Shown here one piece after another: positions 3,539-33,600 of a stretch of DNA of 64,000 nt. Source of the DNA: Amphiscolops sp. MND2022 (lineage: Eukaryota); NCBI GenBank assembly GCA_964187785.1, contig OZ076414.1:6758001-6822000 (forward strand). Direction: 5' to 3'. Below the pieces are notes generated by a model that was not told the origin of the DNA, made no database searches, and saw only the letters and a list, made by a program, of their open reading frames with translations. Numbering within the stretch: the stretch's first letter is position 1; every line of letters begins with the position of its first letter. The translations under genes were made by a program, and so were the position numbers.

Positions 3539-3669
3539 CTTGACTTGGAACTTGTCTTTCTTGCTGGCAGGTGAAGTGGAGGGTCCCAATGTGTAGGTCA
3601 GCGGGTAAGTGTTACTGGCTTTGCCCGGCTCATCTCCAATGAAACCGATTTTACCCGTCAAGAAGGATC
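3539..3669 (-). CDS. TPP2: TPP2 exon 19 (GSFLTGKIG...KKDKFQVK)
   Basis: Acceptor CTGTCAG at phase 1; donor AAG|GTACGA at phase 0. Confidence 0.8.
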
Positions 3670-9600: not shown

Positions 9601-12600
9601 GTACCGAAAGTATTGTCTGCAAAGATCTTTCAAGGAAACAAAGGAAAAGGGATAACCTTGGATGATCTTGCAAAATTGTTGGAAGGAAAGAATTTTTCGT
9701 AACCATGCATACTTCAATTTCAAGTTACTTTAAGTTAAGCATTCATTCATTTATTATATATTTATTAATTCATAATATATTTATAACCAAACGATTGACC
9801 CTGCACTGTAAACGAAACAACTTGATACAGCAACAGCAAGAAGGTTTCCGAGCACAGCACTACCCGGTCCCTTTATCGACTACAACTTGAGATGGAGTCA
9901 ACCAAGCGTTTGAAAAACCCTCAGCTGATCTATACGTTGACTAAGAGTATGGATTGACGGACTTTACAACCAGTTAATTCATCTTGGGGTCTCTGGAAAA
10001 ATGCTACACATTATCAACATTTTGCTCCGAAACAGAAAAATGGTTATACAAATTAGCAACCTTAAATCGAAATGCTTTGTAACAAAGACAGGGCCCCTCA
10101 AGGCAGGGTAATATCACCTCTTCCATTCATTATCTACATCAATGATCTTTTAGCAACACATACGAACAGTTTCAAATTTGCTGACGATACATCTGTTCTA
10201 GTTACGTGCGAAAACCTCGAAGACCTCCAAGTTCGGTTGAACTCGGCCTGTAGAGAAATAGAATCATGGTGTCGAAAATCGAGAAAGGTGGTCAACGGAT
10301 CCAAAACCTAATTGATGCTGCTAAACTGTGAGGCGTCTGCAATCAATCTGCCTACGATACAAGTGCACTCGTATTGAGCACAAAATCTATTGGACTTACT
10401 ATCGACGACAAGCTGAATTACCATGAACATTTGAAAACGGTCACAGTCAAAGCATCAAGAAACTGGCGCATCATACGGAGCAAATGTGCAGACCAATTGG
10501 GTCTCAGCAACTGATCCTACTTTACAATACAGTAATTCTGCTACAAATATTGTACGCTGCACCAACCTGGAGACATAAAAATGTCTCCCATCTCAATAAG
10601 TTTCAGAACAACTTAAATCGAACGATATGGAGACATTATCACCCCTATTGCTGCTAGCGAGGTCCTGCTAGGAATTTCTCCTCTGGACTTGTACGGCGAC
10701 TCGCTCGACATCAAATTCCTAATGAAAGTTACTTTACAATCTGACCTTGGCTCAGCAGCTCATGCTGAAGCTCTCCGAGTTAAAAGCACAGCGCATAACC
10801 TTCAATCCGCACTGAATAGATATCTTAAATACTTTAACCTTAATACTGCTTGTTTTTACAATAATGAAATGGTAGCTGAATTTATAAACAGAATGTGGAA
10901 TCAACATTGGCGTTGTCCTACGAATATCTGCCTCTTGAAACATTTTCTTGTACAACCCCCTGGCTCTACAGTCAGTCCCTTGGCAAACATCCCTCCCCCC
11001 CAGGGAAGCAAATAAGATATGTCGACTTCTCTTCGGCAATTCTCCAAGATATGCAATTTCGTGGAAAATGTATAAACGTGCATCACCCATGTGCTCCTGT
11101 GGACTATCTAAAGAAAATGCTTACCACTTTTTCTTCAGTTGTACCCTGCATGACAACTACAGACCCCATAGCCTGCAAACTCTTAACCTTATGAGGACCA
11201 AAGACTGCACTTCCTTCAAAACTTTCATTCTAAAAACCAAAAAACTGCAATAAACCACAAAGCTTTTGGCTGCTGAACTATAAATACTAACTTAACTCCA
11301 GTTACAAACTGTTTGACTCAACATTCGCACGCAAATAGGGGCTTAATTTAGACGTATATATATAAATGAATTTATGAATTATAATATGCCGAACAAATAC
11401 AGTCGAACTCGGATGCAAGGAACATTTGGATAGAAGCGTTTTTTTACTACTCCGCTTTTATGCAGGACAAACTTTCTTTTATCCATAATTCATTTTACCA
11501 GTCGTTGTATTAAAGAAATTCTTTTCTTATCGCCTTCTGAGCTTCTTTTATCAGAGTTTGACTGTACATAGAAATGACGAATTTATAATCTTTCTGAAAG
11601 TCAAAGGTCATACGTACCCTGAGGTCTATTCTGTAGGGGGGTCCGAAGTGGTGCATGGCGAAGGAGTTGTTGGAGGAGAGGGAGTCCAGTCCGTGGAAGG
11701 AGACCTCGAGGGAGAAGACACTCTCCCAGGACCAGGCAGTCATCTGGGCCACAGTCACTTCCATCAACAGCGAGGGAACCACCTTCGAGCATCAACCAAC
11801 AGCCACCAGTGACGTCATTATTATTGATATTAATCATTAACACTTTCTTTGAGCACCAGATTCCGAATATTTATATACATACATTCAATTACGAGGGATA
11901 CGAATCAGAGAGTAGCCGGCGTTCGGGGTCATTCAGTTTTAGATGAAAATGTAAAATCAGAATGGGGACCCTTTGAAGCCTCTGGTTGCACTTTACATCT
12001 GCTGGTGGGGTGCGGAAAACTCAACACATGAAAACTCAACACAAGAAAACTCAACACAGAAAACCCAACACAAAGTTTAAAAAAAAAAACAGAAAACTCA
12101 ACACATTTAATTAATTTTAGTTAACACCTCAGCTGAGTTTATTTTCCGAAATCTAACTAATTGTTAAATCGGTATTATTTCCGTTTACACTTAGTCACAA
12201 TTGCGACTCATTTTAAAAACATATAAAGACGTATATTTTCCTTTACACCTAATCATGATTGCGATTTTTTCCTACATTAAACTGTTTTTAACGTTGAAAC
12301 AAACGTTGTTAACATTGGCCCAAACCATGAAACAAAACGATAAGAAAAGTTTAAACGCAAACACAAATATTTTTGAGACGAGTCAAATGCATAAATTATG
12401 AGCCGTACGAACAAGGAATATAGATGTATAACATATATCACTATTATTAAATGCTTAAAATGTGTTGAGTTTTCGTGTGTTGAGTTTTCTTGTGTTGAGT
12501 TTTTTTGTGTTGAGTTTTCTGGTAATCCTGGTGCTAAACGCTTGTTAAAGAAGTGAATAATTGGGCGTGAGGTTTGTGGCCTGACAAAAAACTTGCCACT

Positions 12601-15600
12601 GAAGGCCGATCGGTAGATAAAAGATCATAGTTTGAATGAACAATGACCTTGGATTTTTCATATCTGATACTTCAAAAAAGTTCAAATCCGCGCTACATGA
12701 TACACAGAGGCGAAGCCGTGCTTCGCAAACACTTGCGAACTTTTGAAGAAAACCAAATAAGCAATATCATACGGAAAACCAAGGGTAAAAGATTAAAATT
12801 TTACAGCGCCAAAAAATACCCGAAGGGATACGCATAAGCCTCGAAAACCATTCTTCCCCAACTGAAAACAGCAAAAAAACCCATTCTTTCTCAACGGAAA
12901 ACCTTAAACAGAAAATAGAAGAAAACAAATTTCAAAATTTTTCGAAAGCATTTTTGATGGTCTCCGGTAAGTCGCAAAGCCTTGAGGAGTCCTCTCGCAA
13001 AACGTTTCGTTTCTTGTCAAAATTGAGCAGGGGCTTCGGTGAAAACAAATTTTAAAAAAGTCGCATAGAAAAAAGATCGGTCTTTAAAAAAACGGTCTTT
13101 TAAAACTAAAAATTGAGAAAAAATTTTCCGAATTGTTTCGAATTTTTTTGAAGTTTCCGCTAAGTCGCATAGTGCCGAAAAATGTGAAAAAGGGGCACTT
13201 CAGGATTTTATAACATTCGTTCTGTTGCAAGATATCAAAAAAATGAAAGGAGGACGCTTTGGGGACATTAAAAAATTTTTGAAAAAATAAGGGAGTCTAA
13301 AAAATTTTTGAAAAAAAAATTAGAAATTTGAACAGTCTCATAGTGCTGAAAATTCTGAAAAAAGGGACCCTTCAGGATTTTATAACATTCGTTCTGTTGC
13401 AAGATATCAAAAAATTGAAAGGAGGACTCTTTGGGGACATTTAAAAAATTTCGAAAAAAAGTCTCACAAAGCCGAAAAAAAGTCTCACAAAGCCGAAAAG
13501 TCTCATAGTGCCGAAAAAAGTCAGAACCTTCTGCTTCGGAATACTTGTGAAAAAAATTAGCGCATACCCACGGGTTCGAACACGAAACCTCTGGGTTGAA
13601 AAGCAAGCATCTTACCACTAGACCACGAACGCGTGAAACGTGCGAGTTGCCGCGTGAAATCAGAGAGTTGTCGCGCGGAAAAAAAGCACCCGCACTTTCC
13701 CATAACACTTGCTTATCGCAAGTGTAATTATAGAGCTTTTTAGTTGAGAATCATTTCTGTTCATCCCTGATTTTCATAGACTGACCCACATACGGTCCGT
13801 GTAGTGTGCACCCATACCTGTTGATGGAAAAAAGTTGACAGCTCTTTTAGCTGTAATCAGGAAAATTACTACGTCAATAATGAAGCGGTATCATAATTTA
13901 ACTCGGTAAAGAACTTAACGGGCGATTCTTGCTACTGTCCGGACGTAAAAACACTGGAACCCCCTCTAAAAACAACTACCTTTCAATAAAAGTGACAGTT
14001 ATATATAGACCCGGTAATTATTACGACCATTGCAGTGTCAAAAGCAAAAAAATGTAAACATACAACAGTTTGAAAAGTTCAATTAAATTTTATCTAGGAA
14101 ATTCAGTGAGAACATCACTGGCGGTGACCTGACCTCGAAACTGAAGCTCTTAGTGCCTTCTTTCTCCACGACGAAATGTTTTTTGGTTGAGTAGTTTGTG
14201 TATGCAGAACAGTCTTTGACTTGCAGACAATGCAAAACCAGTTTGCTCTGAGAACAGACGGAAACGAGCTTCACTGTCGCAAAACTAGCACCTGGAAAAA
14301 AACAAGGCAACATAAAATCTTCAGTTGTACCCATTCCACGGAAAACGTCATCAATTTGTGTAAGACAATAACAACCAGATGTTAGACAACTGGATAACAT
14401 CATAAGTGAAATTCAACTTGGACATCTATTTTTTTTATATTCTGGAAGAACCTGTCCTCTACAACAATGTATCAACAGGATGTAGTTATTACACTGTCGA
14501 TTAATTAACCCTAATAAACCTGGGCCTTTTTGCAAACTTTCGAAAAATTTAAGGGCTTGTAGTAACAACAGCATATTATTTTGTTTTGTTGACAAGGTCT
14601 TGTGGAAAGGCAAAGGGTTTCCTTTTTCTATAGGTCAAGCAAATTGGATTTAGCTAAAAAGGGAGTTTTGAAAAAATCTAACCATCTTTTCGCAAGAATA
14701 ACCCTTTTTCTCAGCTAAGGAGAAAAATTCACTTTTGCTAATGCTTGTGAGGTTCAAACCAAACACGGTACCAATGAAGTGTTAAATACACCGTTTCTAA
14801 TTTAGATGAACAAAATTTCAACTTAGTTGAACGCCGTGCTTCCTAATTCCACCAATGACAATCAATAAAAATCAATGCTATCACAATTTCAATTCAGATG
14901 AATGAAAGCTAATTTTAGTTGAATAAACCAGAAAGCTAACAAAACTCGGCAGCCAATTAAAACTGTCATTCCAAATTGTCACTTTGATTGAATAAAATTA
15001 CAATTTACTTGAATAAAATGAAAGGCCGAGAATCAAGCAGCAGTTGCATACGGTAAACGCACCAAATTCTCAGTCTCAGCGAAAGAAGAAGTTATTGGAA
15101 ATTGGTGATTTATTCATCTAAATTGGAATTTCATCCAATTAAAATGAAATTTTGTTGCGTATTTAGTTTTATCGCCACTCGCATATTCATCTAAAATGAA
15201 ATTTATTCATTCAAATTGACACCGATCAGCGGGCACATGTAAATGGAACGATTACATCTTATTGGTGAATTCATCTAACTTGAAATTTTGTTCATCTAAA
15301 TTAGAAACGGTGTAAAAGCTGTGCTAAAGAATATGGGCTACTGGCAGGATGAGACCGAAGTTTTTGAAAATGTATTCTTGAAGTACTTCGTTTTAATGCC
15401 TTAACGTACCTAAACACAAAGTATTTTCGAAGATATCGTCCAAAGTTGAAATTTAGGCTGTCGGAAAGACACGGTAAATTTCAGTGAGACATGATTTCAA
15501 TCATAAAAAGAGCAGAAACATTTCATTCATAAAAAGGACAAACATCAATGCTTATTTTCGAAAATGCTCAAAAATGGAGGAACTTGATGAGGAACCAGAT

Positions 15601-18600
15601 CTTGATGAGAGTTGAGACCCAAAAACGTTTGAAATAATCCTTGAGCAGAACGAACCTTTCGATTTCGTTTTCAAGTGATTTTGATTTGTCATAATTCACA
15701 TTTTCAAAAAACAACGATTGAGTTATTCTTTCTGAGTTATCGATTGAGTTATCCTTTTTTTTCTCTCACCTTCAGGAGGGCGGAGGAACCTTCGGAAGAC
15801 CAGCCCCTTCCCGGGTCCCATTTTGATATCCCCGAACGAGTACTTGCTCGGGTTGCCATTCTGTACTTTTAGGGGTTTCAGCACCGAAACGGGGAACCTG
15901 AACACTGGTCCGTACTCCACGTTGCGCTGATCGAAGGCCAGGATTTCGGCGAAATGGGCGGAGCCAGGTTGGAGACATTGCGTGTCCACGGAGGCATAGA
16001 ATCCCCGCGAAGTGTTTGTGAGGTACAGCATGCTGAAGTCGACCAATTTCAGTGTCAGGGGTCAGGGGTCACCCAAATGAAATGATTACACAGTGCACAA
16101 AAGTGTCATTTTTATGACATTATGAAGGAAAGAATGAGAATAAAGGCCATTAGGGGTTCTTAAATTATCTGAGTTAAAGATTTGGCCCTGGATCTCATTA
16201 ACAGCAATTTAAAATAATTTGCTCTAATTTTCAAATTTGATTGGCCCATTCTAAACACAGACAGAACGTATGTGCTACTTGTCCGGTTTGTGAGAAACTT
16301 TCGTTGAATTGTTCACTGAAAATGTTTTTTCAACATCTTCTTCAAAAGCTCTACAAAATATAGAAATGTACCATTTGGCCCAGCACGCTATATTCGAATT
16401 TTAGACGTTTTATCCGAAGTAAATTGCATTTTATTAGATAAGAGGCGGACGTTTGAATCTTATCAGTTTCGATTCCTTCCAAAATCGAAAGAAAAGCTCT
16501 GGTGAGAACAAAAAAGAAAACCTTTTAGGCCCAAAGGGGCCTCTCATTATATCGATAGATATTCTACGTGAATGAACAATGAGTTGCAAGACATTGATGA
16601 ATTTGTTGAGGAATGAAATTGGTCGTTACGGAGGAACATCAACCCAGGGCTGTGTAGCTACTAAGGACAGGGTCATACTGAAGTCACACTTCTGTTCTGA
16701 AGTCCATCTGCGGTTGTTTAAATAGGGTTCCACTGTTACATACGGCTTAGCCTCTTCTTTCAGCAAATCACATTCCTTGTGCAACAAGATTCCTCTTTTA
16801 GTGCCTAGAAAAATAAGCATATATATTGAGAGTACAGAAGTAATTTCGACACTTCAAATTGATCACATTTCAAATCTTCTAAAGGGACCGTGCGTATCGA
16901 AACCTCAATGTGAAACAAAAGCAACGTTTGTGTTTGCCCATGTTGAAGAAGGGGCGCGTTAAAAAGCTTTTCCGGCGTCAAGGCGTTGCCAGCTGCAGAG
17001 CCTCCTCACAGTGCTCATCGTAATAATGTTTTGAAATAGTTGAAATATTCAAATTGAAAAAAATCAGAGCGATGAAGTTTCGAAAAGGATTACAAAACTG
17101 CATAGAAACCCATCACAAATAAACTGTATCGTGTAAACGGTATGTACTAAACAAAACCAGTGACCCAGGTATGAAAAATCATCTGATCTGCAGACCGACT
17201 GAGTTGTATGAATGAAATGAATGAGCTTACAATGGTGGAGAATGCAAGTGGTGGTACCTTTAGCAGAAGTAACTTTGAAGGAGATATTTGTGAGACAGTG
17301 ATCTCCGTTCAGCTTCTTGGCGTGCTCGAATGCCTTGAGAACCTGCAGAACTCCGGGTCCCGACGAGAAGTGGCAATGGTTGGGCATCTTGGAAGCCGTG
17401 TTCTGGATAGCTCTACAACAGTTACAACAACAACTGACACATTACAATTCAAAGGAAAAATAAAACATATTTTTCAAAAAATGAGAGCAAAACAGAGCCT
17501 GAGAAATATTGCAAATGATAACGAAGTGAATTGTAGTTGGGGCATCTCCGACTTATGGGTAAAAGCAGCACCAAATTATATTCTTAAAAGCGCCACGACA
17601 GAAATCTCCTATTCCTGGGTTTTCCTATATCTTCAAAAGCCAAATTCCCAAAACATTTTTCAACAATTAACAAAAATCCATGCTTCGGAAATCATGTCAA
17701 AAGTCTACTCTCATTGCATTACTGTTTCTCAGTAAGTTCTTCATAATTGGGACAGTAAAAACAGTTGATTGTGACGTCATTACACTGTTTTTCGTTCTCC
17801 ACAAGAAGTTATATCCATGCGTGAGTTTTCCTCACTTCATCTATTTGAGTATTCACTAGTTTTTAACTACGTCGCCAGTAGACTAGGGGTGTCTCACAGG
17901 AACAGTCACTGTCGCTTCTAGATTCGGGCCCTAAGCTTTTTTATTTTCGAAGAACTCCGCTTTCTTTTCTCTGGCTAGTCTGCAATGCAAGAAAGTAGTA
18001 CCATTCAAGAAAAAAAGTAAAAAAAAAAACAAAAAACAATATTAGACACAACTCATTTCTATTGCGGTAAATAAGGCTTCCGTCGAGCGGGCGTCTGCAT
18101 TTGAAAGTCTTTTCTGATGAATTTCTGTTATGTAGTCTTCATTGAAATTGTTCTTTATAGATTATTCAACAGATAAATTATTATTATTATTATGACTGAT
18201 GACGTCATTGCTGACCAAGAAGTAGTGCCAAGACGTACCTGTGCACAGAGTAGGGGGTGTAGGGGATGTCCTCGTGTCTCAGGGCCGAGAGCAGCAGGGC
18301 GAGACTGCCGGCCACGTTGGGCGAGGACATGCTGGTCCCGTTCAACAGGTCCTCCCCACACTGGTCTGTCTGGCTCACACTCGTTATGGCGCCTCCGGGC
18401 GCACAGCACGTCACACCTGAACACATCTTTAGTAGTAGCAGCAGTAGTAGTACATTATTTAGGGGTTCAAACCCAAGGGATTAGAGGTGTACCGGACAAC
18501 AAGAATTTTCCTGTCTGGTGCACCTCTACAGGGGGTGTCAATCTCCTCATTTTTAGAGTTCGCGAATTTCGCTTCTGGGTTGCAGTTTCCACAGAAAGAG

Positions 18601-21600
18601 AATTCGCCAAGTACAGAAGTTGTTCACGTTGTAGCGTTGATCTAAGAAGTCCCAGTAAATTATTGTTAGTTTGCTCTTCAGTGATTTGACTATATGTTCT
18701 TCAAAGTTCACCTTTTTGCTGAATAAATTTTATAGACACACTGGTCTGTGCCAGAGCTTTTCCTCGTTTTCTTTAGTTAGTCTAGTCTTTTCACTCGGAG
18801 CTTTTTGAAAAAAAGGCACGACTCTTCGAGTAGCTAGTTTTTCTTCCGTCGAGGTGAAACGTCAACTTTCATAAATTTTTCACCTAACCTCTCTCGTATT
18901 TTGTTCCACTCGTCTTGCACCCGTTCCCACAGCTCAGCAACGCTCTCAGGAGGTTTAGAATACATTCGCAATTGGTACTTCAGCGTGTGCCAAAGGTGTT
19001 CAATTGGATTTAAATCCGGTGATTGAGGAGGCCAGTCCATAACTGTTATTCCATTTTCCTCAAACCAGTCTTTCGCCAATTTTGAGGTGTGTTTAGGGTC
19101 GTTATCCTGTTGAAAAACGATGTCATCTCGTCCCCATCCATAGTGTCGTATTGTACCCATGAGATTATCTGATAAAATCTCGCAATAAAGCTGGCTGTCC
19201 ATGTTTCCCTCTATTTTACACGCCTGACCAATTCCCAAAGAAGTCATACATCCCCATAGCATCAGGCTTCCACCTCCGTGTTTAAACGTACCCTGCACGT
19301 GGCAGTCCAATAATGGTGCTTTAGGCTTTTTCCACACCCACTGGAGCCCATCGGAACCAAATCTGTTTATTTTGGTTTCATCAGACCATATGACACGCTT
19401 GAAATCTTCTGGTGTCCAGTTGGAATACTTCCGTGCGAATTCCAATCTTTGTTGTCTGTGTTTTCTACTCAAGAAAGGTTTCTTCTTTTTCTTGATTGCT
19501 TTCAAACCACTTTTCCTCAATACTCGCCGGATAGCTTCAGGGTGCAATTGTGTTTCCATTGTATTTGAGAGCTCTTTAGCCGCATCAACAGCTGTTTGTA
19601 TCCTTCCTGACGACATGTCTCGGACGAGTTTTCTTTTGTCATATGGAGTTAATTTTGATGGACGACCTGCTTTTGGTTTTGCAAGGCCATTGAAATGCTC
19701 GCTCCTCAATCGGGTCACCGTCATATGACTAACAGATGGCACCTTCTTGGCAATTTGCCTTGTAGATAAACCCTCCGCTACATACTCGAAAATCTGCGTT
19801 TTGGTTGAGATGGGTATAACTTTCATAACAGAAACAAGTAATTAGAGACTGTGAGTGACAAAGAATGAAAATTGTAAACGGAAATTTAACAGTTGAAATA
19901 ATGTAGGAAGTGGTTTTTGCTTTTTGTAATGGCGCACACGAAATTGTAACAATAAATGTTTTATGATTCAACGTGCAACCAGAAAAAAGCGTGAAGAAAA
20001 ACAACTTCCGGTGATTGAAAACAACATGAGAAGAGTATGGTTGTTTTATTATATGGTTGTTTCTAACATAACATTTGTCTATGAACTAAAATACCCTTTA
20101 TTAGAAATATGCCTATCTATTGTTACACTTTCGTGAGGCACTGTACTTTAATGCTTTCATTCTATTTTTTTTATAATTTTTTCCTAGTTGATTTCTGTGA
20201 AAAGAAAGATTTCTGAGTATGAAAATAGGCCCCTGCAGGGCACAGTAATAATTCTGCATTAGAGTACAATAACCATTAAGGTTTCGCATTTGTATTTGAC
20301 CGCATAATTAACACTCAATGAAAGCGCTGCATGGCAGCTATCACAATTAAATTAACTACCTCAAGCTTGGAGTAGCCAATCAAAATTGGTAAAGTGGGTC
20401 GATAAAGAGATCTTGAAAAAAGATCACATTTACTGCTTCTTTAACATTTCAGCTAACGCAAGCTAATACAAGCCGCGAACGACCCAAGTAGGCGCCTGAG
20501 CGTTCAGAAAAGCAAAAATTTACAATGGGCGAAGGGACACTATTGTGAACATTTTCATCAATGTCACAGTGCCGTAAAATACCCGAAGAGATACCGTCTT
20601 TTTCACAATTATTGAGAAAACTCTCATCAGTCTCACAAGATCAAAACATAACCAAAGGGGTCACCCTTAAGACTCGGAAAATGGTTTTGCTTTTTGTTTC
20701 AAATATTTTCAATTTTCTTTCGGTAATTCGCAGAGCAAAAAAAACCTAAAGTGGCCTTCTATGCTCGCTAAACGCTTTGTTTCTTCTAAAATTCAAGGGA
20801 CACTTCAGTTTCAAAAACGTCGGGAAAATGTCGCATAGTGCCAAAAAAAAACAAAAGGGGGACCTTTTATGCAAGCAAAAAAAATTGTGGTTTAAGGCGA
20901 GACTCGAACCTGCCTTCGTACTCTTCCTTCTTCTCAGACCTCTCAGTCCCCAAATCCGAGTTAGTCTCTAGGCCAAGTGGCGGTGACAGTATAGAAACTT
21001 ATACACAAATATGCTCATAGAAATCTCACTTGGCTGGTTTCAAAAAAGCCACTGTTATAGTCTGTTCTTTTCTTCGAAATACGCCAATTAAAATATATTT
21101 GAGCAAACTTGAGTTAGAACAAGAGTGACTCACCGAGGAAGCCGTCACTGCATGGACCCCTGCTGGACCAGGAGTAGTGCTGGGACTGGGCCCCGCTGAC
21201 ACTGTGCAGGGAGTACTGGGCCTTGCGCATGGCGGGCGAGATGTAAGCAGACACGCCGAACACCCCGTCGCACGTGCCCCCAGGCGCGCCTCCCGTCCTC
21301 AGCGCGGGCCCGTTGTTGCCGAAGCTGACGACACACAAAAACGATCATCATTCAACAAAAACGATCAGTCACTACAATGTAATTACAGAGGAGAAGAGGG
21401 TAGGGTAGGATCACAATGTAGAAGGGTCAGGCGTCAAAACCTTGAAGAGAAAAACGGGGTGTAAAAACCAACCAACAAAAACAGTGGCGGATACAGAGAT
21501 GGTGCACAAAAATGTTTTGTCAGTGAGATTGGGTTCTTATCCTGTGACAGGGGCGGTTTTAGGATTATTTCAACGGGTGGGCGCACCGGAACGAGAGCAC

Positions 21601-24600
21601 CAGTTGAATATTTGGAACCAAGAAAACTCGGTTCATTTTACCGGCTGTGACATCAATTCATTTTATTCATCTTTCCAAAGGGACAGGCGGCCGTCCTTCT
21701 AGCGGCCCCCATAAAACCGGCCCTGTCCTGTGGCGTTTTTTTGTTTCCAGTTGGGGAAAAGTGATTTCCAAGTCTTATCGAGCACGAAAGGCATCATTTG
21801 AGTGTATCGAAACTTTTCTGAGCTTTTCATAAAAACGTCCTGAGCATATTTTAAAAACTGCGCTTTTTGAGCAGTGGGGGCAACTGTACTAGAGTGGGGT
21901 GCTTATTCGGATATTACGTCGCTTTCGCTTCTTTTGCGCTTTCGCTCCTCACAAGCAATCTAATTAATCCACTGGTGATTGTGTGCTTACCTGGAAACGA
22001 AGCAGAGGTCGTGGTCTTGAATAGAACGGTTGATTGCAGTCATGATGCGCCCAACTCCGTGGAAGGCCGAGGGCTCCCCGAAACTGTACAAACCAGGGAT
22101 TATGCTTGGAAATTCCATCAAAAAACACGCGAAATTAAAAGTAATACAAAATGTCCAAACAATTTCGATTCAAAAACAAGTTTGTTTAATAGCCCTAGAC
22201 TGGACCCAAGTAGGAATTGAACACTGGAAAATAAAAAATTCAAGGTATTTTTTGATGTTTCTGTCAAAAGAAAAGCGTTTCTGAGGCCACAGGTCGCCCT
22301 TTTGGATATTTTTTGCCACTCTGAAAGTAAAAAATTTCCTAAAAGGTACCATCCTGAGCATTTCTAACATTTCGAAACTTTACGCAAATCGGGGCACCGA
22401 CTTTAGACGGTCCCGCCTTGTCTTCTTGTAGCGTGATTTACATTCTGTTGTATAAATCTCACCTACAATCATATGTAAATATACAAAGTTTTTTTTTAAA
22501 AAAATATTAACATGATTAAGGCACAAAAACAATGGACGGAAATGTAAAACATTCAATCTGGAACACTTATGTCGGCGAAAACGTAAACGTTCGCACAACA
22601 TTGGTGTAGGTTGAAGTGAATAGAAGACGTGAATAGTTAGTTGTTTGGAGTGAATAGCAGCAATGCAAGCATAACTGTAGTTGGCGACGTGGATGTTGTT
22701 CCGATTGCAGTAGTCCATGGCACGCGTCAGAGCAGTGCCAGTCTCCATGGCGTGGATACGACTGTCCCCTATGTTGATACTGCAACGAAAGAATCAATAC
22801 TCATCCAACATTATTCACAATCACTGCGACACTTTTCAATATTTTTCCAGAAAAAAGCTAGTTACTGTGTTTATTTCAAATAAAATCAGTTGAAAGATAA
22901 TCAAACTTTTGTAAATTTTGTGATAAAATGCAGCCTATAATCAATTTCAAACAAACTTCAAATTGCAAGGAATACTGTTTATCATCAGCACGCATAGAAA
23001 GTGATCATCCCTCGAACGAGTTCAGGCTCGACATTCTCGATTGACAATTTTGAAAACATCAAAAATGCAAGTTTTTAGAAAGTAACAAGTTGCGTGATTC
23101 GTTTAGAGGAGGGTGATCAACTGAATTCGTGACTGAATTCGAGCAACATGAACGGATCAAGAAACTATTCAGCGGTTGATTCCAAGAGCGAGTCATCAAT
23201 TCACGATTCCTTTTTCAGTCGGCGTTTCCGATAGTTCCATTTTCGAAAAAAAAACAGAAACAGCGTTTTGCCCCCGTAAAGTTTTTCGACACTATGCGAC
23301 TTATCGAAGACATTTTTCTGATAAAAATTCAAAAAAAATTTCTCACCCAATTTTTCTTTTTAGCATTTTCAATTTTTTTTGCATATTAAAAGCCCTTTGC
23401 TCTTTTTGAAACTTGAGGAGGGGCGCCGACTCGGGAGGTAGGTTGTTCCCGGCTTGTTTCCTACCTTACAGCTAGCCAGTCAGCCAGCCAGCCACATACC
23501 TGACAATTTGAGCGCCTGGGGCGACTCCGTTCAAGTCGGGGTTGTCTGGTCGGTGGGCAGAGGCGATGCCGGCCACGTGGGTGCCATGGTGGCTCCTGGT
23601 CGTCACCAGAACTGTCACCTCCCCACTCTCGCCGTACACACACACCGAGTAGTTGCACATGCACTCCGAGGAGATGCGCCCCACGTCCAACGACTCTCGG
23701 TACGGGCGCAGCACTTGGCACGACTCCAGGTCGCCTAAAGACACACGAGAAGCACATACTGGAAAGCAGGCAGGGTTCACAGAAAAACAAGACTTTGGAA
23801 AAACCGTGTTTAAAACATTAAAATTTTCTGTTCAAAACCCTAGATCTATCGCATAAATAACGTTTATTAAGCAGCTAATGCTTAAAAAAACGTTCCAAGC
23901 CTGTCGATATTGGAATAAGAACCAGAAGCGCATCGGCAATTTTTCGGATGTCTTCCGCCAAATTGCTCAAGATTACTTGCGATTTTAGAAACTTGAAAAT
24001 ATCTAACTGAAATGAAAACAATTGAGCGAAATGAAGGCTTTTGTCATGTTTAAAAAACTCTATTTAAAACATGTTTAAAACACGTTTAAAACACCGGATG
24101 TTTTAAACATGCGAACCCTCAAAGCAGGGTTGGTTTTAAAAAAATATTCTTATACGTTTAAAACGTTGTAAAACAGTTTGAGAGCTGAAAACTCACTTGA
24201 CTCCACCATCACAAAAATTACTCAGAAAAAAAGGTTAATTCAGCAAGCACATACAAGGAGGCCAGTTTACGAACTTCTCAGGTTTCAGTCTATTCCGAAT
24301 TTCAGAATTCACGTGAGCCCTGCATGAAAAACTCTCGCCAGACCAGCTGAAGACGTGTGAAAGGTGGTCTGCGAAAATAAAAAAGCGAACTAACGCGCTA
24401 ACATGCAAACTCCGCTGGGAAGTAGTCGGAAGCACATTAGGTAGAAATATTAAAGTTTACGGGTCGATAGCTGTTTACGTGGACAATGACGCAAGCAAAC
24501 AGTTACAGAAAACTGAAATTACAGGATAATTCCAGAGAAAACGAGACAAACTAACAGAAAACAAAGGGCATAAATCAATTATATATTGAAAGGAAACAAG

Positions 24601-27600
24601 CCCGGAATGAAATGTATGCATATGACATTGGATGCATAAAAAATGCAGTTTGGCCGTCTCGGTGGTGAGATATTATTGTACAATGTATATGTCAGTATAT
24701 GTCAGTCATTAACCCTAATTAACCTAGTGGTACTTTACAGCCACCTTTTTCTATTTCTGATTTGCCAGCAGCCCAAATTTTCTAGCACCATTTTTTGCAA
24801 CAATTCAGTGGTACCTGGAGTGATTTGAATGGCACAAGCATTAGAAAAAGTTAAAATGTCTCCAAAGCTGAGAAAAATGTGTTATCATTTTCCAAAACTC
24901 AGTCTTTGGCGAAATCCAGTTTTCTCAGAAGTCCTTAGAAAAATAGAAAAAGCTACACAATGTCCTCCCTCAACAAGTCCTTGTGCAACAAACCCCAATA
25001 ATATCCGGTTGTTACTACAAGCCCCCGAAGTGCGGAATGGCCGTGAAGCGGCGATAACAGATAAAGAAGCTAAAATACTAAAGAATGGGGCGCGCTGCGA
25101 TAGGGGCTCGCCTGATCGAAAATAAAGCTCAATGCCAGACCATTCAAACGCGCTATAGTTGATTTCTCTGGTATGCTTACTTGAAGATATCAATTTACAA
25201 TTTTGAATCAGATTTTTGAAATTTTGCCAAAAACGCCCAGGTCGATTACAGTTAAAAACACAGACAAAATTAGTGATTCTATCCCCGAATCACGAAACTA
25301 TCCCACAACGGAAAGGCTACTAACACGCAATACCCTTTCTGCTTAAATTCCAAAACTTTATTTGAATCCGGAATCCGGGCATCATTAAATCTTCGAAGTT
25401 TCTAAGCTTACTTTTTTGTGGTTTCTACTGTGCGAATCATTTGTTTAAGCAAATGTGTTTATTGAATACAAATGAGCCACAGATAAAAATATTGCTAACA
25501 TAAACTATGTATGCTGCTTCCATGCGATTGGAACTTTCTAAAATGGAAGATTTCACACAATTTTGTTCACATTGCTGAACAAAACACTAAAAAGTTGGCG
25601 TGTTGAAAGTTTTCAACCGACTCATTTTGTTTAAGCAATTGTTAAACAGTGGTGTGTAGCCTGTTTTATGTTTACCCAACGTGTCAAAGGAAACCCGAAA
25701 TAGGATCTTGAAACGCCTGGGAAAGGTACGCAAAGCCAAAAATTACATGACGATGGATTTTCGCAATGTCTTCAGAGACGAAAGTCGAGCAACACTGGAT
25801 AGTCCTGACGGCTTTTGCAGACGCTGGGTAGTCGATGGAGAGAAACCCCCAGTACGAAAAGTGCGACATAGAACGAACGCCGACGTCTGGTATACATGCA
25901 GGATAATGCGCCCTCACATGCCGCAAGACAAATGATGTCCTATTTGACGTCTATCGTTTTTTTTCGGATCCAAACTAATGGACTGGCCAGCGTGTTCACC
26001 GCATTATTCGTGCCAAGATGACCTCGGGAGCGCCATCAAGCAGGCGCATGCTGAAATTCGGCCAAAATTTATCAAAAAAATTGACGTCGTCGGTGGATTC
26101 TCGATTAGTCAAAGTTTTCGAGAAACAAGGCGACTATAATAACATGTGAATTATGCCAGAACTCTCATTTCTCTGTTCTGTTGTTTCGGTTGTCACTATT
26201 ATTAATTGAACATTAATTTATCTTGCTGATACATTACATTTCTTGTTTTTGCATAAACAAAGTGAGCCACCCAAATATCGCTAAATGTATTTTAGAGTGA
26301 TCATATCCTGGCAAACACTATTAATATAGCTTAGTATATGGGCCTTTACATTGTCCGTCGACACCTTGAAATTAATTGGCAACTGTGTTTCTATTCAGAG
26401 AAATATCTGAAAAAAAGTTTGCTTAAACAAATGACCCACGCTGTAAGTACCTGTCATCAAAGATAGGAAAATATCAATGCCACGGGGCTCTTGGTTGACT
26501 TCACACCAACCTGTGAAAGAGGTATCGACACAGACACACCACCCTGACCTTTTGACCCCGTTCTCATTTTCTTCCGTGTCGCCGCCCTCCTCAGACGACC
26601 CGTCATTCCATGTGATGACGTCAGCTACTGGTCCTTGGTCCGGGAACTTCTTCTCTATGCTCTCCAATACAGACAACTGGTTGAGAAGGTCTTCTTTCTG
26701 ATTGGTCAGCAAAGTCTGCTCGTCACTTCTGGAAGTCTGCAAAATTAAGCTTGCATGTTAAAACAAAGGTGCCCGTCCATTGCGCAAATGACTGTGGCGG
26801 GGAATGACATCAAACACACTGATGCTTCTCACCTCAGCACGTTACCAGTTGAGTAAAAATAAACAAACATAAAAACCTGTCTGAGCCAATAATACCAGAA
26901 TGAAGACTGAAAAAAAATAATTGGAGCCAATGTTTTCTGCATACATAAAAGGGTTCTCCTTGACCTCTATGCCAGCTAGGAGTATTTTTGATTTTTGGAC
27001 CATGTGTCTCATTTCTCCCCAGGTACAGCTTGCTTGGAATTCAATTCACCCCAAGGGGAAAGCAAATTTTGTTTTTGAATGAAAATATTTCACTAAGAAA
27101 ATATGATGTGAATGTAAGTACTTAGAGGATTGTCTTTACAGCTGTTTTGACCCACGAAAAAATGAACCTAGTTTTTTGATATTGTCCAAAATAGCAAAAA
27201 TTCACACTTGGAACAAGCTAAAATCGTATAAAAAGGGCCTTATTTCAACGCAAATTTTCTCCGCGATAAAATCTAACAAGCAACTTTTACCTGCCAGTCA
27301 ATGTAAAAGATAGGATAATGTCAATATCGATACTTTAATTGGACAGAAATTTCAACGTAAACGATGACAACATAATGGTATTTTAACCTTTTTTTTGAAA
27401 AAAAAATGCGGCAGCACAAAAATTATCCATATCCACAAGTAATTTCACTATTCTGTTCAAACTGATTTCAAATTTTGTTTAAAACGGACAAATATTTACA
27501 AACCGATGACGTTGAAGAAGAATCTTTGTCAGTTCCTCCCTCTTTGGACTTATCCGACGAAGAAGAGGACAGAACTTCGAACGAGGATTCCAGTTCAAGA

Positions 27601-30600
27601 AGACGTCGTTTGATACTTGCAATGGTCTTGGCTTGTCTCTCCTCCCACAGAGCTTGTTTTCGCTTCTCAATCACTCGCTTCTTTGTGCCGGGGTAGTACA
27701 ATTCAAAGATGTTTTTGATGCCTGAAAAAAAGTTAGTCAACTGCTAAACTTCAATGCCATATGCATGAACGAAATCGTGACAACGGTTGAACAAACAAAC
27801 ATGTGAAAACTTTCCTTTGAAGAACGGATTAAGTACTAGTTATTCCATGGCTTGTTCATGCATCGAGAAATTAATTTCAGTCGAGGCCCAGAGATGTTAC
27901 AATTATGCGGCGCATAATCCCGCACAATTCCGCATAATCTGACGTAATTTTCGTCGCGCACTAATTGCCGCATAATTGCGTTATATTGCCAAGTGTTGCC
28001 GCATATTTCTGAGAAATGTAAACCAAAATATCAGCTATTATTCAAAAATTAATGATTCTGGTAATTCTTATTAGGAATTAATTATGCCCAGCCCTGTAAG
28101 ATGTTACAATCGGGCGTTTCTTTTACTGGAGAAACCAAAGAAACGAAAAAGAGATCATTCTTCATCAGTGGATGCCCCAACACGCGCAAAAATGTTCCAA
28201 AACTCAGACTTTTTTTGCCAAAAAAGCCTAATATTCTGCAGATTGAGTTGAATTTCAGTTTTGACGAACTTATTTTTCCCCGCATAATTCCTCTGATTAG
28301 CGCATATTTTACATTTTTATACAATTTTTAGCGCATAATTTCAATAAAAATTCCGCATTCAGCATCGCATAATTCCGTGAAAATCCCCGCACTAAAGTAA
28401 CATCTCTGGTGGAGACTGAAATGAACTTCGAGATTCGTCAACAAGCCATCGAATAATCAGTTTAAGCCAAACTTTTGAGTGAACAAAATTTCTAAACAGT
28501 AAAATAACAAATCGTTAATGAACTGTTTTGTCTGTTAATGCACTGTTTAAATACTAAATCTGTTAATGCATCGTTAAGTTAATCAATTGACTGTTCACGC
28601 ACAAGTGTGGCTCAATGAAATTAGGAAAACAATTTTTTTTCAATACTCGAATCAGCTAGCATGGAATAATCTTGAATTGACATTGTTGAAATGTGAAAAC
28701 GTTGAAACAACAAAAGTGGTAACGCGGTGAAAAAGAATCCGCGTTGACTAAATCAGTTCTTGAATGAGTTTTTCAAGCCCTCGTTCGGCACTCGAAAGTG
28801 AAATAATTCACTCGTGCTTCAAAGACTCATTTAAGAACTACTACTTTAGGTCGAGTTTGCTCCAATTCGCGGAATTCATTCCGGTTAGCTCCTTGATTTC
28901 CGGTCGAATAAATTCATTCAACGTATGAAACAATCTTCTTCTATGTGAGTCGACATCAACTGTCAGTGCAGAAACACCTATTTCAATATCATTGCTGTGC
29001 CAAAAACCCAACATTGTTGTGCTAAATGGCACATAAATATTCTACTGACCTTTCAGTGAGAATTGCTCAAGAATAACTCAAAAAAGCCGTCTGATAAATC
29101 ATCTAGTTTTGAAATTTTTGTGAGGAGTAAAATTGACGAAAAAACAAAAGATTTTCTTGCCTTTGTAAGAGTCGGGCACTTTTTGTATCTCAAATAGCGC
29201 CGACTAAAAATGCTTGAAATTCGTATAACTACTGAAATGATTGTCTTGTATCTAAGTCGAATAACGACGTTGTTTGTTTATATTCACATAAGTTTATATT
29301 CATAAGTTTGGGTATAATCGTGCAGACTTCGTGATAACTGAGGAAGAAAGAAATGCTACGTTACAAATCATTGAGGACTCAGAACTCCCCAGCTCGAAAC
29401 AGAGTTTCTTTTTCGAAGTTTGCAGCAACATATAAAGCTAAGTGTCACGTCCGAAATTTAGTTCAACAGCAGAAGCGGTGTAGTATTGTTCTTATCATAA
29501 AGGTATCCTTTGAGCGGAAGTTTGATTCATTTACTACTCGTGACTTTCCACCAACTCAAGTTATTTAAGTTTATTCCATTTATTATTTTTGATGCCACGA
29601 GGCTTCCTACTGAGCGGGTGCAAGCCCTTTGGAAGTCTCTTCCTGATTTCACATTTAAAATGTTTGTATGTATATAAATTGATTTTTTTTGTATTGAAAT
29701 CAGGACAAATAAATTTATTATTATTATAATAGCATTCCTACCTATGTTGAACTTGTTGGAGGGGTTGTTCCATGAAGGTGGGATCTTCAGTTTGCGCCCT
29801 GTGAGTCCGGTGATGAATCCAAACTCATCAGGGGACACTTTAGTCGAGGTGTCGACGTCCCCACACCCAGTTGTGTCGATGCAATCCACTATCTTCCGTC
29901 TCCCGTCAGTAGTTGTCTGAACAGAAGAGAAGCTCAATTCAAAACAACTCATTCAACCCGATTTTTTTGCAAAAATATTAAAAGTTCTGTCTAAAGAAAC
30001 TTTCTGTTCTGTGCGGTATCATCTGCAAAACTGGTCCGTCTGGTACTAGCTAAATATCTTTGTAATTTGTACGCCCATGGGCAACAAATTAATAATAAAT
30101 TATTCATTAATTCATTTCAACCCCATGTTTTTCGCAACAAAAAGAGGTGCAAGTCCGACAGCGCCAAAAGCAAGTACACGACTCGCTTCCAAAATCAGTA
30201 AAAAGAACGGCGAATCCTATGCGAGCGTCATGGGCTGCATTAGGACAGGACGAATGTCAGCTTCGCTCTGCTAATAAAAAACTCGATATACCAATAATCG
30301 AATCATCTTTCGGTGCAATTCTTGATAACAAAAGGTTGTCAAACTGACAACCTCCATGCAAAAATTTTGCAAATTGCTACTTCACCTCACGACTATTCAA
30401 CTGTAATGCTGTGTTGTATTTCATGATATTTCGTTCCCTTGCCAATGTTTTCAGATTCCTATTTTTGGGAACGTCCCTGACACTGTAAGGCGGCTCTGCA
30501 GCTTGAGCGTATCTGACGTCACTTTCCCGCGCTTGAACAAGGACTCGAACACTCACTATCTACTCTGAAACCGGGGTTTCAGTACGCACGATCTACTCAA

Positions 30601-33600
30601 ACACCACTGATGAGAAAGGCTTTGGTCGTAGTTTTAGAACAACAATTAGATTGCATCCGTTGAAATTTTGGTAACTAGTAGATACTGGTATCGATAGTCG
30701 TTCAAATTGTCCACTACGATCGGTTACCGGCCAATGATGATTTACATTCAGGAAAACAATAAAATAAGGTCACGTGCAGGTTAAGGGTCTAATAACGATG
30801 TCATGAAATAGGGGCACTACGGGGCACAGTATTTCTGCTTTTATGCTTCATGTTCAATAATAGAAGCATATCTTAATCATTTATATAGCGCACTAGTAAT
30901 CACTTTACACGGCCTTTAATTCTTCTCGGCCTACAGACAATATAACTTGAGCGTAGAGGAAGCATAATTACGAACACTCGCTCGCTTCATTTCAATAACT
31001 CGGCGTACGAATGCATAAATACCACTCGCTCGTTCCATCGCACGAGAAACGAATTGCTGTCGGCAGCTTGAGAAATTCTCACGCTTACCACTCACTGCCG
31101 AACAAATTGTCTTAATTTTTCAGTAGGTACTCAAAAACACGACAAAAGCTTAAAAAAAGTTGAATTGTTGAGATTTTATTATTACTGCTATCGCAGAAAC
31201 AAAAATAAATGAGAATCCAGAACATTGAAAAATGGTGGGCATTTGAAAAGTCAGAGCTCAATATCACGAGAGTTGACATTGGAAGAAACTAGCACAGATG
31301 AAGGGCGAAAAGTACCCTGCAGCCTAATCGTTGTGATGAACTTATTAAACAGTTTCCGGTTAAATGAGATCCACAATGGACATTGATCAACGCTCCAGAC
31401 TACGCTCATGTGATGCAAATTTCCACCACACAATCTCTGAGCTGAGAGAAACCACCAACTAAGATGTTCAGAAGACTGAAACCAAAACAAAGAAGGACAC
31501 TGTGGTATGCATTTTGAGAAGCCATTGCCCAACTGGAACGCAAATCACTGAACCGGCAGAAATTGCAGACATCAAAGTTATCCTGGAAACGTCGTGTCCG
31601 AAAAAGCATTAACTTCCGCACATACACCACACACAGACATCCATGCATCCAATCCCTCATTAATGAAGCTTAGCTCTAAATCCTTGAAAGGTGATCTCTT
31701 ACAAAATTCGTGTTCTGTGTGTTCTAGTGAGGAGCAACTTGAAAGATCAATAGCAGATATTGTCGAAGCTAAAGAAAGGAAAATTCTCAACAACTTGGGA
31801 GAACGAGTTGAGATTCCAGTCTAACATCTGAGTTTCAAAACTCATCGTCAGAGAATGATCATAGTAGAACTCAAACCTTAGGGATGGCATGAACGAAAAA
31901 TTTTCTTCAGAGCGGCTTCTAAGTCAAACATGATCTTTTCCCAGAAGACCAGATAAATGAGCAACAAAACTTTTAGGGCGTCATCAATTGATAACAGGAG
32001 TAGACAAAAAACTCCTGAAGCCCCGAGGTCTAAAACTCTTTAACAACGATGTTTATTCAATTTAAATTTATCATTCAATTTAATTTTATTGTATCATTTA
32101 ATTTTTACGACAATGTGCGTAGCCCTTCTCAGGTCAAAGTGATCTTCACTAAAATCTCCATTCTACAATGCTGATGTTATCTGTGTCTCTGAAACCTGGT
32201 TTGATTGTAACGCCAAAAAGCCATCTCCCAGAACATAGTACGATGTTGTCTCAAGAGCGGATCGTGCTATGGGTTCCTGCGGCGGTGTTCTTATTCTGAC
32301 AAAAAATTGTTCATTGAATAGTGAAATAAAGCTGAAAGTGTTTTCGTTGCTGTATGTAAAATTCGTCCTCTGCTATAACAATTGCCGAATCTACAATGCA
32401 CTCGTGAAAGATACACGAAAGTACCATCTTGAAAGAATTCGATTCAGTCAGATTCCATCAAAAACGAAAGATCTGTTGATTTTTGATGATTTAAACTACT
32501 CGAACACTGATTGGCAATGTTTTACAAGGCCCGGAAGCGATGGCGTGTGTTTTACGTTTTTAAAATCTCACTTATCCAACTCGTAGATGGGCTCCACAAA
32601 CTTGTGATCACAAACTCAAACAAAACTAATCTCCGCGAAGTCAATAAAAATTATTTCTCAGTTTCTCTCCAGCAGAGATTGAATCCCTCCGTCTATGCTC
32701 TGCACAAAGCGTCTGCTCTTCAACAATGGCTATGATGATTCTGTTCGTGATTGGCTTCCTTGCTTTTTTAACATCAACTAAGTCGTACATACAAAACGTT
32801 CTTGGAGGCAACAGTTTCCTTCGTTTCATTCGCACAGCTTCCATCTACTGAGTGGGCTTAAAACTTATTCCTCCAAATGGATAGTTTTGCCAAAAAAATT
32901 AGGTAACCTGCGAAACTGGTTCGAACGTGTGCTACAAGATGATCAAAAATCACTCCAGTTCTCCTGACATTCCTCTTAAGGTAACCTGGAACAATATCAC
33001 GGCTTGTTGTCTATGACAAGATAGCAAAATCGTTCAATATGTATTTCGCATGAGCGTACATCAAGAACATTGTTTGAACAGTCCGGCGACAGCCATCTGC
33101 AATCTCTCAAATTTAGCCAAAAAACTTTTTGTGCTCTCAAGAAAGCCACTGGTGGAACTGGCCCCGACGAGATACTTGAGGAAACCCTGCACTGTTTAGC
33201 AAATGAGATCTCGCATCATTTACTTTTATTTAGCCAAAATTTAGAAACAGGCCCCAATCATGCGTTAGAATCTTACACTACAAAATGGAAGTCGCAACTG
33301 TTTCTTCTTATTTTTAACCACCTGGAAAGCTTTCATTGGTTTCGGACTGCTGACTTTCTGACAAACTATATCAGTTTGTTGAAACGTCAATATCAAAACA
33401 TCAGTATGGCTTCTTAAAGCGCAAATCAACCACTTCGCTGCCATTGGACTTCGAGAGATGCATACTCTTGCAACGATAGTAGAGAAATTGAGCATAAACT
33501 TCATGTTGCCCTCGCCAAAACATTCCACAAAATTTTTCATTAAAAAATGTAAGCGAAATTAAATTGCAAGAAATGGTACATCAAGTAAATCAACACATGC

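Follow-up and report, generated by a model that had tools for sequence, protein, structure and literature searches.

The TPP2 locus and the junction between exons 6 and 7

The window, i.e. the whole 64,000-nucleotide stretch of Amphiscolops sp. MND2022 contig OZ076414.1 analyzed here, holds most of TPP2, a minus-strand gene encoding tripeptidyl-peptidase II. Our interest in this gene centers upon its sixth intron, which appears to require a non-canonical junction if a conserved block of the protein is to remain intact. A profile built from 41 full-length orthologs located 19 collinear exons, running from 57231 down to 3551 and covering profile positions 9-1009. When these are joined with 591 nt taken out as intron 6, the model comprises 1033 codons without a stop, and the resulting protein carries the motifs DTG, HGTHV, GTSMS, and GNNGP, with the catalytic D, H, and S all present. 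In a single-exon Pfam search, cut-offs were exceeded by Peptidase_S8 (PF00082; 30.4 bits on exon 5, 29.9 bits on exon 9), TPPII_Ig-like-1 (PF21223; 38.9 bits on exon 12), and TPPII (PF12580; 62.7 bits on exon 16). The gene therefore combines a Peptidase_S8 domain and its Asp/His/Ser motifs with TPPII-specific domains, as is the case for the TPP2 family of the MEROPS S8 subtilases. Neither the C-terminal ~240 residues nor TPPII_C were located, and the remaining exons were not found in the 20 kb beyond the window start. TPP2 is present in a single copy, with exons 6 and 8 each matching this locus alone in the 1.07-Gb assembly. A metagenome contig of 890 bp carries its nearest library match, individual short TPP2 exons found no match in the PDB, and Rfam detected no known RNA within window positions 21000-24000.

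Exons 6 and 7 correspond to profile positions 294-331 and 328-359, respectively, which are consecutive with nothing missing between them. A first-pass annotation of this DNA had described a 591-nt TT...AG intron as the join that preserves the motif here, and its exon numbering and boundary letters both agree with the 19-exon profile: TTATGCTTG comes right after exon 6, GGTTTGTACAG comes right before exon 7, and taking out 22674 through 22084 yields V-A-N-Y-S-F-G-E-P-S. Within this product lies the N-x-S-[YF]-G-E block, which we take to comprise the oxyanion Asn and the substrate-N-terminus Glu of TPP2. Among the 150 best library matches, N-x-S-[YF]-G-[ED] is unbroken in 81, and the same is true of 31/41 full-length orthologs, while several others read N-x-S-x-G-G. 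As had also been recognized, the sequence TACAGTT occurs exactly at both ends of the intron and lets the junction slide, in total through eight registers of identical mRNA (TA-TG, AC-GT, CA-TA, AG-AC, GT-CA, TT-AG, TA-GT, and AT-TT). Exhaustive enumeration found GT-AG, GC-AG, G?-AG, and AT-AC to be absent from all eight, and N-Y-S-[FY]-G-E does not stay contiguous under any GT-AG, G?-AG, or AT-AC join. Judging from the sequence, an uninterrupted N-x-S-[YF]-G-E block should be present in this TPP2 only upon a non-canonical excision of 591 nt. In the sole register ending in AG, +1 is U, which sets the intron apart from the relaxed G(A/G/C)-AG donors with their G at +1. The remainder of the donor does resemble that of intron 5, as the first-pass annotation had remarked (CAG/GTATGT for intron 5 and CAG/TTATGC for intron 6; a slash marks the cut site). 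TACAGTT is the longest junction repeat among the 18 introns of the gene, the others being 0-5 nt, but its length is only moderately beyond chance, since CAG at both ends is splice consensus and leaves ~4 extra matching bases.

Several other ways of connecting the two exons were considered and rejected. An unseen micro-exon, which had been raised as an outcome that would overturn the TT...AG join, is ruled out by the consecutive profile positions, which leave no room for it; a canonical path would require an exon of 1, 4, or 7 nt. A nested (twin) intron fails by reasoning from the sequence, as no internal GT-AG removal creates a GT-AG outer pair in any register. A GC-AG join between 22670 and 22074 has a very poor donor and loses the Gly-Glu, while ribosomal -1 frameshifting on an mRNA shortened by 1 nt lacks a slippery heptamer.

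The nearest GT does shift the frame when joined to the AG at 22084, as previously stated, and this is the basis of one rival explanation. According to this rival, the locus is a null or hypomorphic allele in which either the adjacent ACA/GUUAUG or a strong cryptic donor at 22462 (UAG/GUGAGA) is used, which would frameshift and truncate the protein before the catalytic Ser and leave TPP2 (nearly) inactive in this stock. A stop indeed follows 14 codons past the junction when the GT at 22675 is joined to the AG at 22084, the 5' end of U1 is canonical, shifted-register recognition of /GUU... donors is known, and TPP2 loss is tolerated in some animals. On the other hand, all 19 exons are open and the genome holds no compensating paralog.

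The further claim that the 591-nt join is the only frame-preserving one, with no in-frame GT alternative, proved incorrect. Seven GT donors (22599, 22596, 22566, 22530, 22524, 22401, and 22383) give in-frame and stop-free joins to the AG at 22084, although none of them preserves the motif, as they place 25-97 extra residues between N-Y-S and F-G-E. An open stretch of the length found here (Table 1) has P ~0.004 given the 5.4% stop frequency in the introns of this gene, and among 48 other intron/frame starts, none stays open beyond 70 codons. The second rival is a longer exon 6 that is spliced canonically, in which 22596 (GUU/GUGCGA) or 22599 (AAU/GUUGUG), or less likely one of the donors from 22566 to 22383, would be spliced to the AG at 22084 with the insertion of 25-26 (up to 97) residues. 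Besides the unexpectedly open frame, this rival can call upon the degeneracy of the bona fide donors of the gene (e.g. GAA/GTTCTG and TCC/GTAACG), and it would explain selection downstream of the junction without any unusual chemistry. However, the oxyanion-hole block N-x-S-x-G, unbroken in all orthologs seen, would be interrupted by such an insertion and the Glu displaced, and the ortholog profile has no extra positions at this point.

Table 1. Features of the TPP2 locus, in window coordinates; plus and minus signs before nucleotide numbers count from the 5' and 3' ends of the respective intron.
Feature	Position	Strand	Details
TPP2 gene, exons 1-19	3551..57231	-	41-ortholog profile, Pfam, joined model
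Exon 6	22675..22779	-	acceptor ttgcag/T; ends ...CAC GTC GCC AAC TAC AG
Intron 6, 591 nt	22084..22674	-	written TT...AG; seven other registers yield identical mRNA
Exon 7	21991..22083	-	begins T TTC GGG GAG; then canonical donor CAG/GTAAGC
Direct repeat, copy 1	22673..22679	-	TACAGTT, across exon 6/intron boundary
Direct repeat, copy 2	22082..22088	-	TACAGTT, across intron/exon 7 boundary
Nearest GT	22674..22675	-	ACA/GUUAUG; with AG at 22084, 1 nt lost and stop 14 codons on
Read-through ORF (open reading frame)	22383..22793	-	exon 6 frame open 99 codons into intron
Terminal helix, 5' arm	22666..22674	-	UUAUGCUUG; intron +1..+9, the donor itself; 9/9 complementary to 22108-22100
Terminal helix, 3' arm	22100..22108	-	CAAGCAUAA; intron -25..-17, then 16 nt UCCCUGGUUUGUACAG to 3' boundary
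Second, nested helix, 5' arm	22641..22649	-	UCCAAACAA; +26..+34; contains segregating SNP (single-nucleotide polymorphism) 22644
Second, nested helix, 3' arm	22154..22162	-	UUGUUUGGA; -79..-71
Predicted small hairpin	22076..22098	-	CCCUGG (22098-22093) with exon 7 UCGGGG (22081-22076)
Nested dispersed repeat in intron 6, ~195 bp	22233..22427	-	73-86% identity, at least 198 candidate loci
Intron 7 (GT-AG)	21325..21990	-	7-bp terminal helix, +6..+12 with -14..-8
Intron 11 (GT-AG)	16033..16629	-	10-bp perfect helix, +5..+14 with -17..-8
Intron 15	7836..9203	-	no GT option; best join GCG/GCCCCCUA...ACAGAG/A (GC-AG, GCCCCC, very poor donor)
Intron 18 (GC-AG)	3670..4756	-	CAG/GCACGA...GTCAG/G; 11-bp perfect helix CGAUUAUCAAA with UUUGAUAAUCG, +4..+14 with -26..-16

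Haplotypes and selection across the junction

A run search for this species returned public DNA runs only, four in number, from two samples of one study; their contigs were placed on positions 21000-24000, of which 21918-23311 was spanned. It should be noted that these are contigs rather than raw reads and that one of the samples may be the source of the assembly itself. One contig (X1) is identical to the window over 21918-23311 (0 differences), whereas three others (X2, X3, and X4) differ from it at 22384, 22518, 22606/7, 22644, 22722, 22841, and other sites, as well as by small indels. At position 22674, in both TACAGTT copies, and in both arms of a terminal helix described below, there is no difference in any contig of the four DNA runs. 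The first-pass annotation had named position 22674 as the site to inspect in genomic data, as an assembly or consensus error with G as the true +1 would account for the junction by a single base and the rest of the donor resembles GTATGC. This explanation is refuted by the contigs, which agree upon T at 22674 in all four runs while differing elsewhere, and we accord it next to no probability. A similarly negligible chance falls to a DNA-level somatic excision of the 591 bp between the TACAGTT copies, akin to that of internal eliminated sequences. The direct repeats at the ends of the intron and the inverted repeat near them do resemble excision substrates, but none of the contigs from the four DNA runs joins 22675 to 22083, and the word depth of the intron-bearing contig equals that of its flanks.

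At least three haplotypes carry the T at +1, and two of them differ 30-70 bp away. Because the T is shared by haplotypes that differ at so short a distance, it is old rather than a fresh mutation. Five SNPs fall within exons, of which four are in exon 8 (21186, 21210, 21246, and 21321) and one is in exon 6 (22722, CGT>CGG), and all five are synonymous third-position changes. As 24-29% of random changes would be synonymous in this coding sequence, the 5/5 outcome has a probability of ~0.001-0.002 under neutrality, and for exon 8 alone, which lies downstream of the junction, the 4/4 outcome has a probability of ~0.003-0.007. Purifying selection thus acts upon TPP2 both before and after the junction, and the gene is intact. 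Together with the N-x-S-[YF]-G-[ED] block of the orthologs and the single-copy status of the gene, selection downstream of the junction also bears out the earlier contention that the reading frame must be kept. A frameshifted gene would be unconstrained in exon 8, and so the exclusively synonymous exonic SNPs, four of which lie beyond the putative frameshift, disfavor a null allele, as does a T at +1 that is shared by haplotypes differing 30-70 bp away and is hence not recent. The loss-of-function allele that had been listed among the possible explanations is accordingly disfavored on four counts (single copy, 1033 open codons, synonymous SNPs, and an old T), and we regard it as unlikely.

The intronic differences bear upon the longer exon 6. 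In the first 25 codons of the read-through stretch, 3/3 SNP positions (22644 and 22606/7) are non-synonymous (K>N and T>P/K, respectively), and the longer versions of the read-through are disrupted in other haplotypes by single-nucleotide deletions (22489 and 22498). These SNPs and indels argue that the stretch is non-coding, and canonical splicing with a longer exon 6 seems quite improbable to us. Overall, the SNP pattern favors a join that is in frame and preserves the motif, both over a null allele and over a longer exon 6, albeit in a small sample.

Pairing between intron ends and the origin of intron 6

The first nine nucleotides of intron 6 are perfectly complementary to a segment near its 3' end (Table 1), and the resulting terminal helix appears in both the minimum free energy and the centroid folds of the whole intron, with the last G of exon 6 adding a G-U pair. 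As a null, the first 14 nt of each intron were compared with interior 80-nt windows of the introns of the gene. A perfect match of at least 9 bp has an empirical null P = 0.0017 per intron, yet such a terminal helix was found in 3/18 introns (9 bp in intron 6, 10 bp in intron 11, and 11 bp in intron 18; P ~4e-6). We also performed a looser energy test of 45 nt against 95 nt with 100 dinucleotide shuffles, in which introns 11, 12, 13, 15, and 18 all score 0-1/100. Thus, end pairing is a real and recurrent property of the introns of this gene, including several with GT donors. At p <= 0.05, it is found in 3/3 of the non-GT introns (6, 15, and 18) compared to 5/15 of the GT introns, and the association with non-GT donors that these modeled pairings may reflect is suggestive only. 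The other 15/18 TPP2 introns are GT-AG, with donors that are rather degenerate, as exemplified above. For intron 15, there is also an alternative GG-AG join that is 2 residues shorter, and its end pairing is stronger than in 100/100 shuffles. The helices of introns 11 and 7 each leave GUAA(G) unpaired at the 5' end and 7 nt before the AG. At the 3' boundary of intron 6, a further small hairpin is predicted that abuts the terminal helix and holds the boundary within an 11-nt loop; it is weak, having 6 bp that include 2 G-U pairs. Intron 18 also contains an internal inverted duplication, with query positions 62-222 matching their own reverse strand at 99%.

The ends of intron 6 are unique in the genome, as its flanking parts of 245 nt (5') and 149 nt (3') produce only self-matches in the 1.07-Gb assembly, and the same is true of introns 7, 11, and 18, which have single-copy ends and, in the case of introns 7 and 11, dispersed repeats nested inside. 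We therefore rejected a transposable element or introner family as the source of intron 6, in which only the nested 195-bp repeat is dispersed. A clean element with terminal inverted repeats and a target site duplication was rejected as well: between the 3' arm and the boundary there are 16 nt, and the TTA/TAA beside the arms belongs to the palindrome rather than to a direct target site duplication.

As had been proposed at the outset, we compared the intron positions with those of orthologs, using the mapped TPP2 boundaries of the oyster Saccostrea cucullata, the cephalopod Argonauta hians, and the beetle Harmonia axyridis; three further library TPP2 records are transcripts and therefore yield no intron positions. 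None of the three species has an intron at N-Y-S/Y-G-E. Both molluscs share introns at ...VRA/M(I/V)KV (in which only the first slash is a cut site) and at ...(S/G)G/RV... (only the second), and the beetle has the latter; intron 6 falls between these two conserved mollusc positions. Only 1-3/18 of the TPP2 intron positions coincide with those of the comparison species, namely intron 1, to which introns 3 and 13 may perhaps be added (A. hians or H. axyridis). Nearly all of the ancestral TPP2 intron positions have been replaced in this lineage, and intron 6 is thus a young intron, one of many that are lineage-specific.

Its simplest history would be a CAG/GUAUGC donor in which the G changed to U, a change that also lengthens the terminal helix by one U-A pair. 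Such a +1 G>T change had been suggested by the first-pass annotation, and the context still fits it (CAG before the cut, +3A, +5G, and YAG), but it now has to compete with another origin, an insertion accompanied by a 7-bp duplication. This alternative, for which Daphnia neointrons offer a parallel (PMC4202315), agrees with a position found only in this lineage and with the short repeats inside the intron, and it would imply that intron 6 was born without a canonical register. The selection data imply the removal of the 591 nt whichever of these origins applies.

Probable excision of intron 6 and its possible precedents

The explanation that we lean toward as probable is a genuine, in-frame, non-canonical excision of intron 6 from a functional single-copy TPP2, so that the genuinely used junction previously offered as one option is now favored by the sequence data, though not proven. 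Exactly 591 nt would be removed to yield an mRNA reading ...AAC UAC AGU UUC GGG GAG (N-Y-S-F-G-E; spliced product AACTACAGTTTCGGG). Because everything except +1 looks spliceosomal, i.e. the CAG, +2U, +3A, +5G, the pyrimidine-rich tail, and a YAG acceptor (UACAG) like the others of the gene, we infer that the spliceosome would cut in the register CAG/UUAUGC...UACAG/U. In the folded transcript, the donor (+1..+9) would be paired to -25..-17, clamping both ends of the intron, and this helix may offset the missing +1 G by keeping the cut sites together. Spliceosomal UU-AG excision aided by such a clamp is the most likely of three routes. A second would employ the AG...AC register (UAC/AG...UAC/), whose terminal A and C form a pair isosteric with G-G (PMC13326754) and whose context matches the Fritillaria class discussed below. 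A third would be an excision guided by structure instead of performed by the spliceosome, like that of Amoebophrya or Euglena introns. The three routes give an identical mRNA and cannot be told apart from DNA sequence. A minor-spliceosome (U12-type) assignment finds no match, as none of the eight registers begins with RTATCC (the consensus being /RTATCCTT, with branch site TCCTTAAC), and U12 snRNA was not detected in a genome search that was weak for this purpose. We also looked for a variant U1 that would match UU at +1/+2 and found none among the 12 best copies.

A number of points weigh against such an excision. No nucleotide of spliceosomal introns is more conserved than the G at +1, a position considered to be chemically the most critical, and yeast and mammalian mutagenesis indicates that U at +1 is very poorly tolerated by the spliceosome. 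In most of the 12 best U1 snRNA genes, the 5' end is the canonical AUACUUACCUG, which pairs with GU, and U1 binding would normally be inhibited when the donor is buried in a helix. In the energy test, intron 6 taken alone scores 5/100 (p ~0.05). The nested second 9-bp helix is broken by SNP 22644 with no compensating change seen, and we gave this helix no weight. The selection test comprises only 5 SNPs, from contigs of one study. The spliced 26-nt junction was not found in metagenome contigs, the exon 6 peptide was unmatched in a protein collection (candidates of 75-240 aa) that does not include transcripts of this species, and there was no RNA run among the public runs found for the species.

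Introns that resemble intron 6 in certain respects have been described elsewhere. Those of the dinoflagellate Amoebophrya have non-GT-AG ends, an inverted repeat of 8-20 nt, and a direct repeat over both boundaries that makes the cut site ambiguous (PMC7789003). Intron 6 likewise has non-GT-AG ends and a boundary direct repeat, and its 9/9-nt inverted repeat is within the 8-20 nt range. However, the Amoebophrya introns belong to a protist, in many cases form multi-copy families, have direct repeats of 3-5 nt, and were verified by RNA to be excised (PMC7789003), whereas intron 6 is found in an animal, has single-copy ends and a 7-nt repeat, carries its 3' arm 16 nt inside the boundary, and is predicted to be excised. 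By the Amoebophrya definition, it is not a member of an introner family. In the larvacean tunicate Fritillaria borealis, one report (PMC13326754, with Henriet 2019 as cited there) describes an AG/AC class in which a YAY triplet precedes the 5' cut, the last three intron bases are again YAY, and the terminal bases are A...C, and which is spliced by a U2-type spliceosome; 95% of F. borealis introns are non-canonical. Intron 6 can be written as AAC UAC/AGUUAU...UUUG UAC/AGUUUC and as such displays this signature of YAY and A...C, although a YAY has a chance of ~1/16 and the two copies are non-independent owing to the repeat. Unlike the situation in Fritillaria, 15/18 introns of this gene are GT-AG, and the acceptor of intron 6 also reads as an ordinary YAG with a pyrimidine tract. 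Furthermore, intron 6 has a predicted hairpin, while none is described for the Fritillaria class. The TPP2 protein has no special affinity to that of Oikopleura (45% identity). Relaxed +2 donors (GA/GG/GC-AG) occur in Oikopleura dioica and in the copepod Eurytemora affinis, but these retain the G at +1, as do TPP2 introns 15 and 18, whereas intron 6 has U at this position.

The nonconventional introns of Euglena have variable non-canonical borders, a structure that brings their ends together, and the code 5'-N3-CDG ... CHG-N5-6/R (PMC12501133, PMC4770533). Intron 6 deviates from this code in having UGC at +4..+6, a 3' spacer of 16 nt, and an exon 7 that starts with U. Newly gained introns in Daphnia pulex have boundary direct repeats that stem from staggered double-strand-break repair (PMC4202315), but their splice sites are canonical, whereas the repeat of intron 6 offers no GT-AG register. 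The 5'-most 60 nt of intron 6 contain three copies of an 11-mer similar to GAAGTGAATAG (22613-22657 on the plus strand; CTATTCAC on the RNA strand), and these resemble internal direct repeats described for young Daphnia introns. Our literature search found no report of non-canonical splicing in acoels, nor of introns such as intron 6 in acoels or other non-tunicate animals. What is new at this locus is a donor without the +1 G, an argument for function that is based upon polymorphism, and statistical support for terminal helices within one gene.

A broader proposal, which we put forward only tentatively and consider to be possible rather than probable, is that intron 6 belongs to a class of young, lineage-specific, helix-clamped introns in which structure instead of GU would define the 5' cut, such that the donor could decay from GU to GG/GA/GC and then to UU while the gene remains functional. 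Such a class would parallel, in an animal, the introns of Amoebophrya and Euglena that are defined by hairpins, and it may be processed by a modified spliceosome or some other activity. If this essential-looking, selectively maintained gene does depend upon a non-canonical excision of intron 6, the splicing machinery of this lineage would accept substrates that were thought to be impossible, through either an end-to-end helix or an A-C terminal pair, and an animal outside the tunicates would be added to the few organisms in which non-canonical introns are associated with structure. In this genome, such genes will be disrupted or put out of frame by standard gene predictors. The locus is also a clean, testable case, in that the gene is single copy, the intron is short, the motif is diagnostic, and natural haplotypes exist.

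A few additional observations concern the U1 genes and the remaining TPP2 introns. The genome contains at least 21 U1 snRNA genes of two sequence families (GGCGCCGGCA... and GACAUCGAGA...), many of which are clustered on one contig (C12), with others on C8, C13, and C7, and one copy (L038) has the divergent 5' end AUAUUUAAACCUG. Introns 7 and 5 hold very high-copy repeats (21505-22009 and 23222-23322, respectively), for which the summed word depth reaches ~80,000, while these runs cover single-copy sequence at ~36. Inside intron 8 (18837-19841, minus strand) lies an intact ORF of 335 codons, which by eye resembles a Tc1/mariner transposase. Lastly, the 27-kb intron 1 harbors an apparent tandem duplication of ~4.5 kb (window positions of about 31000-40000), in which near-identical ORFs are found at 32294-32443 and 36680-36823 and again at 33000-33215 and 37460-37675.

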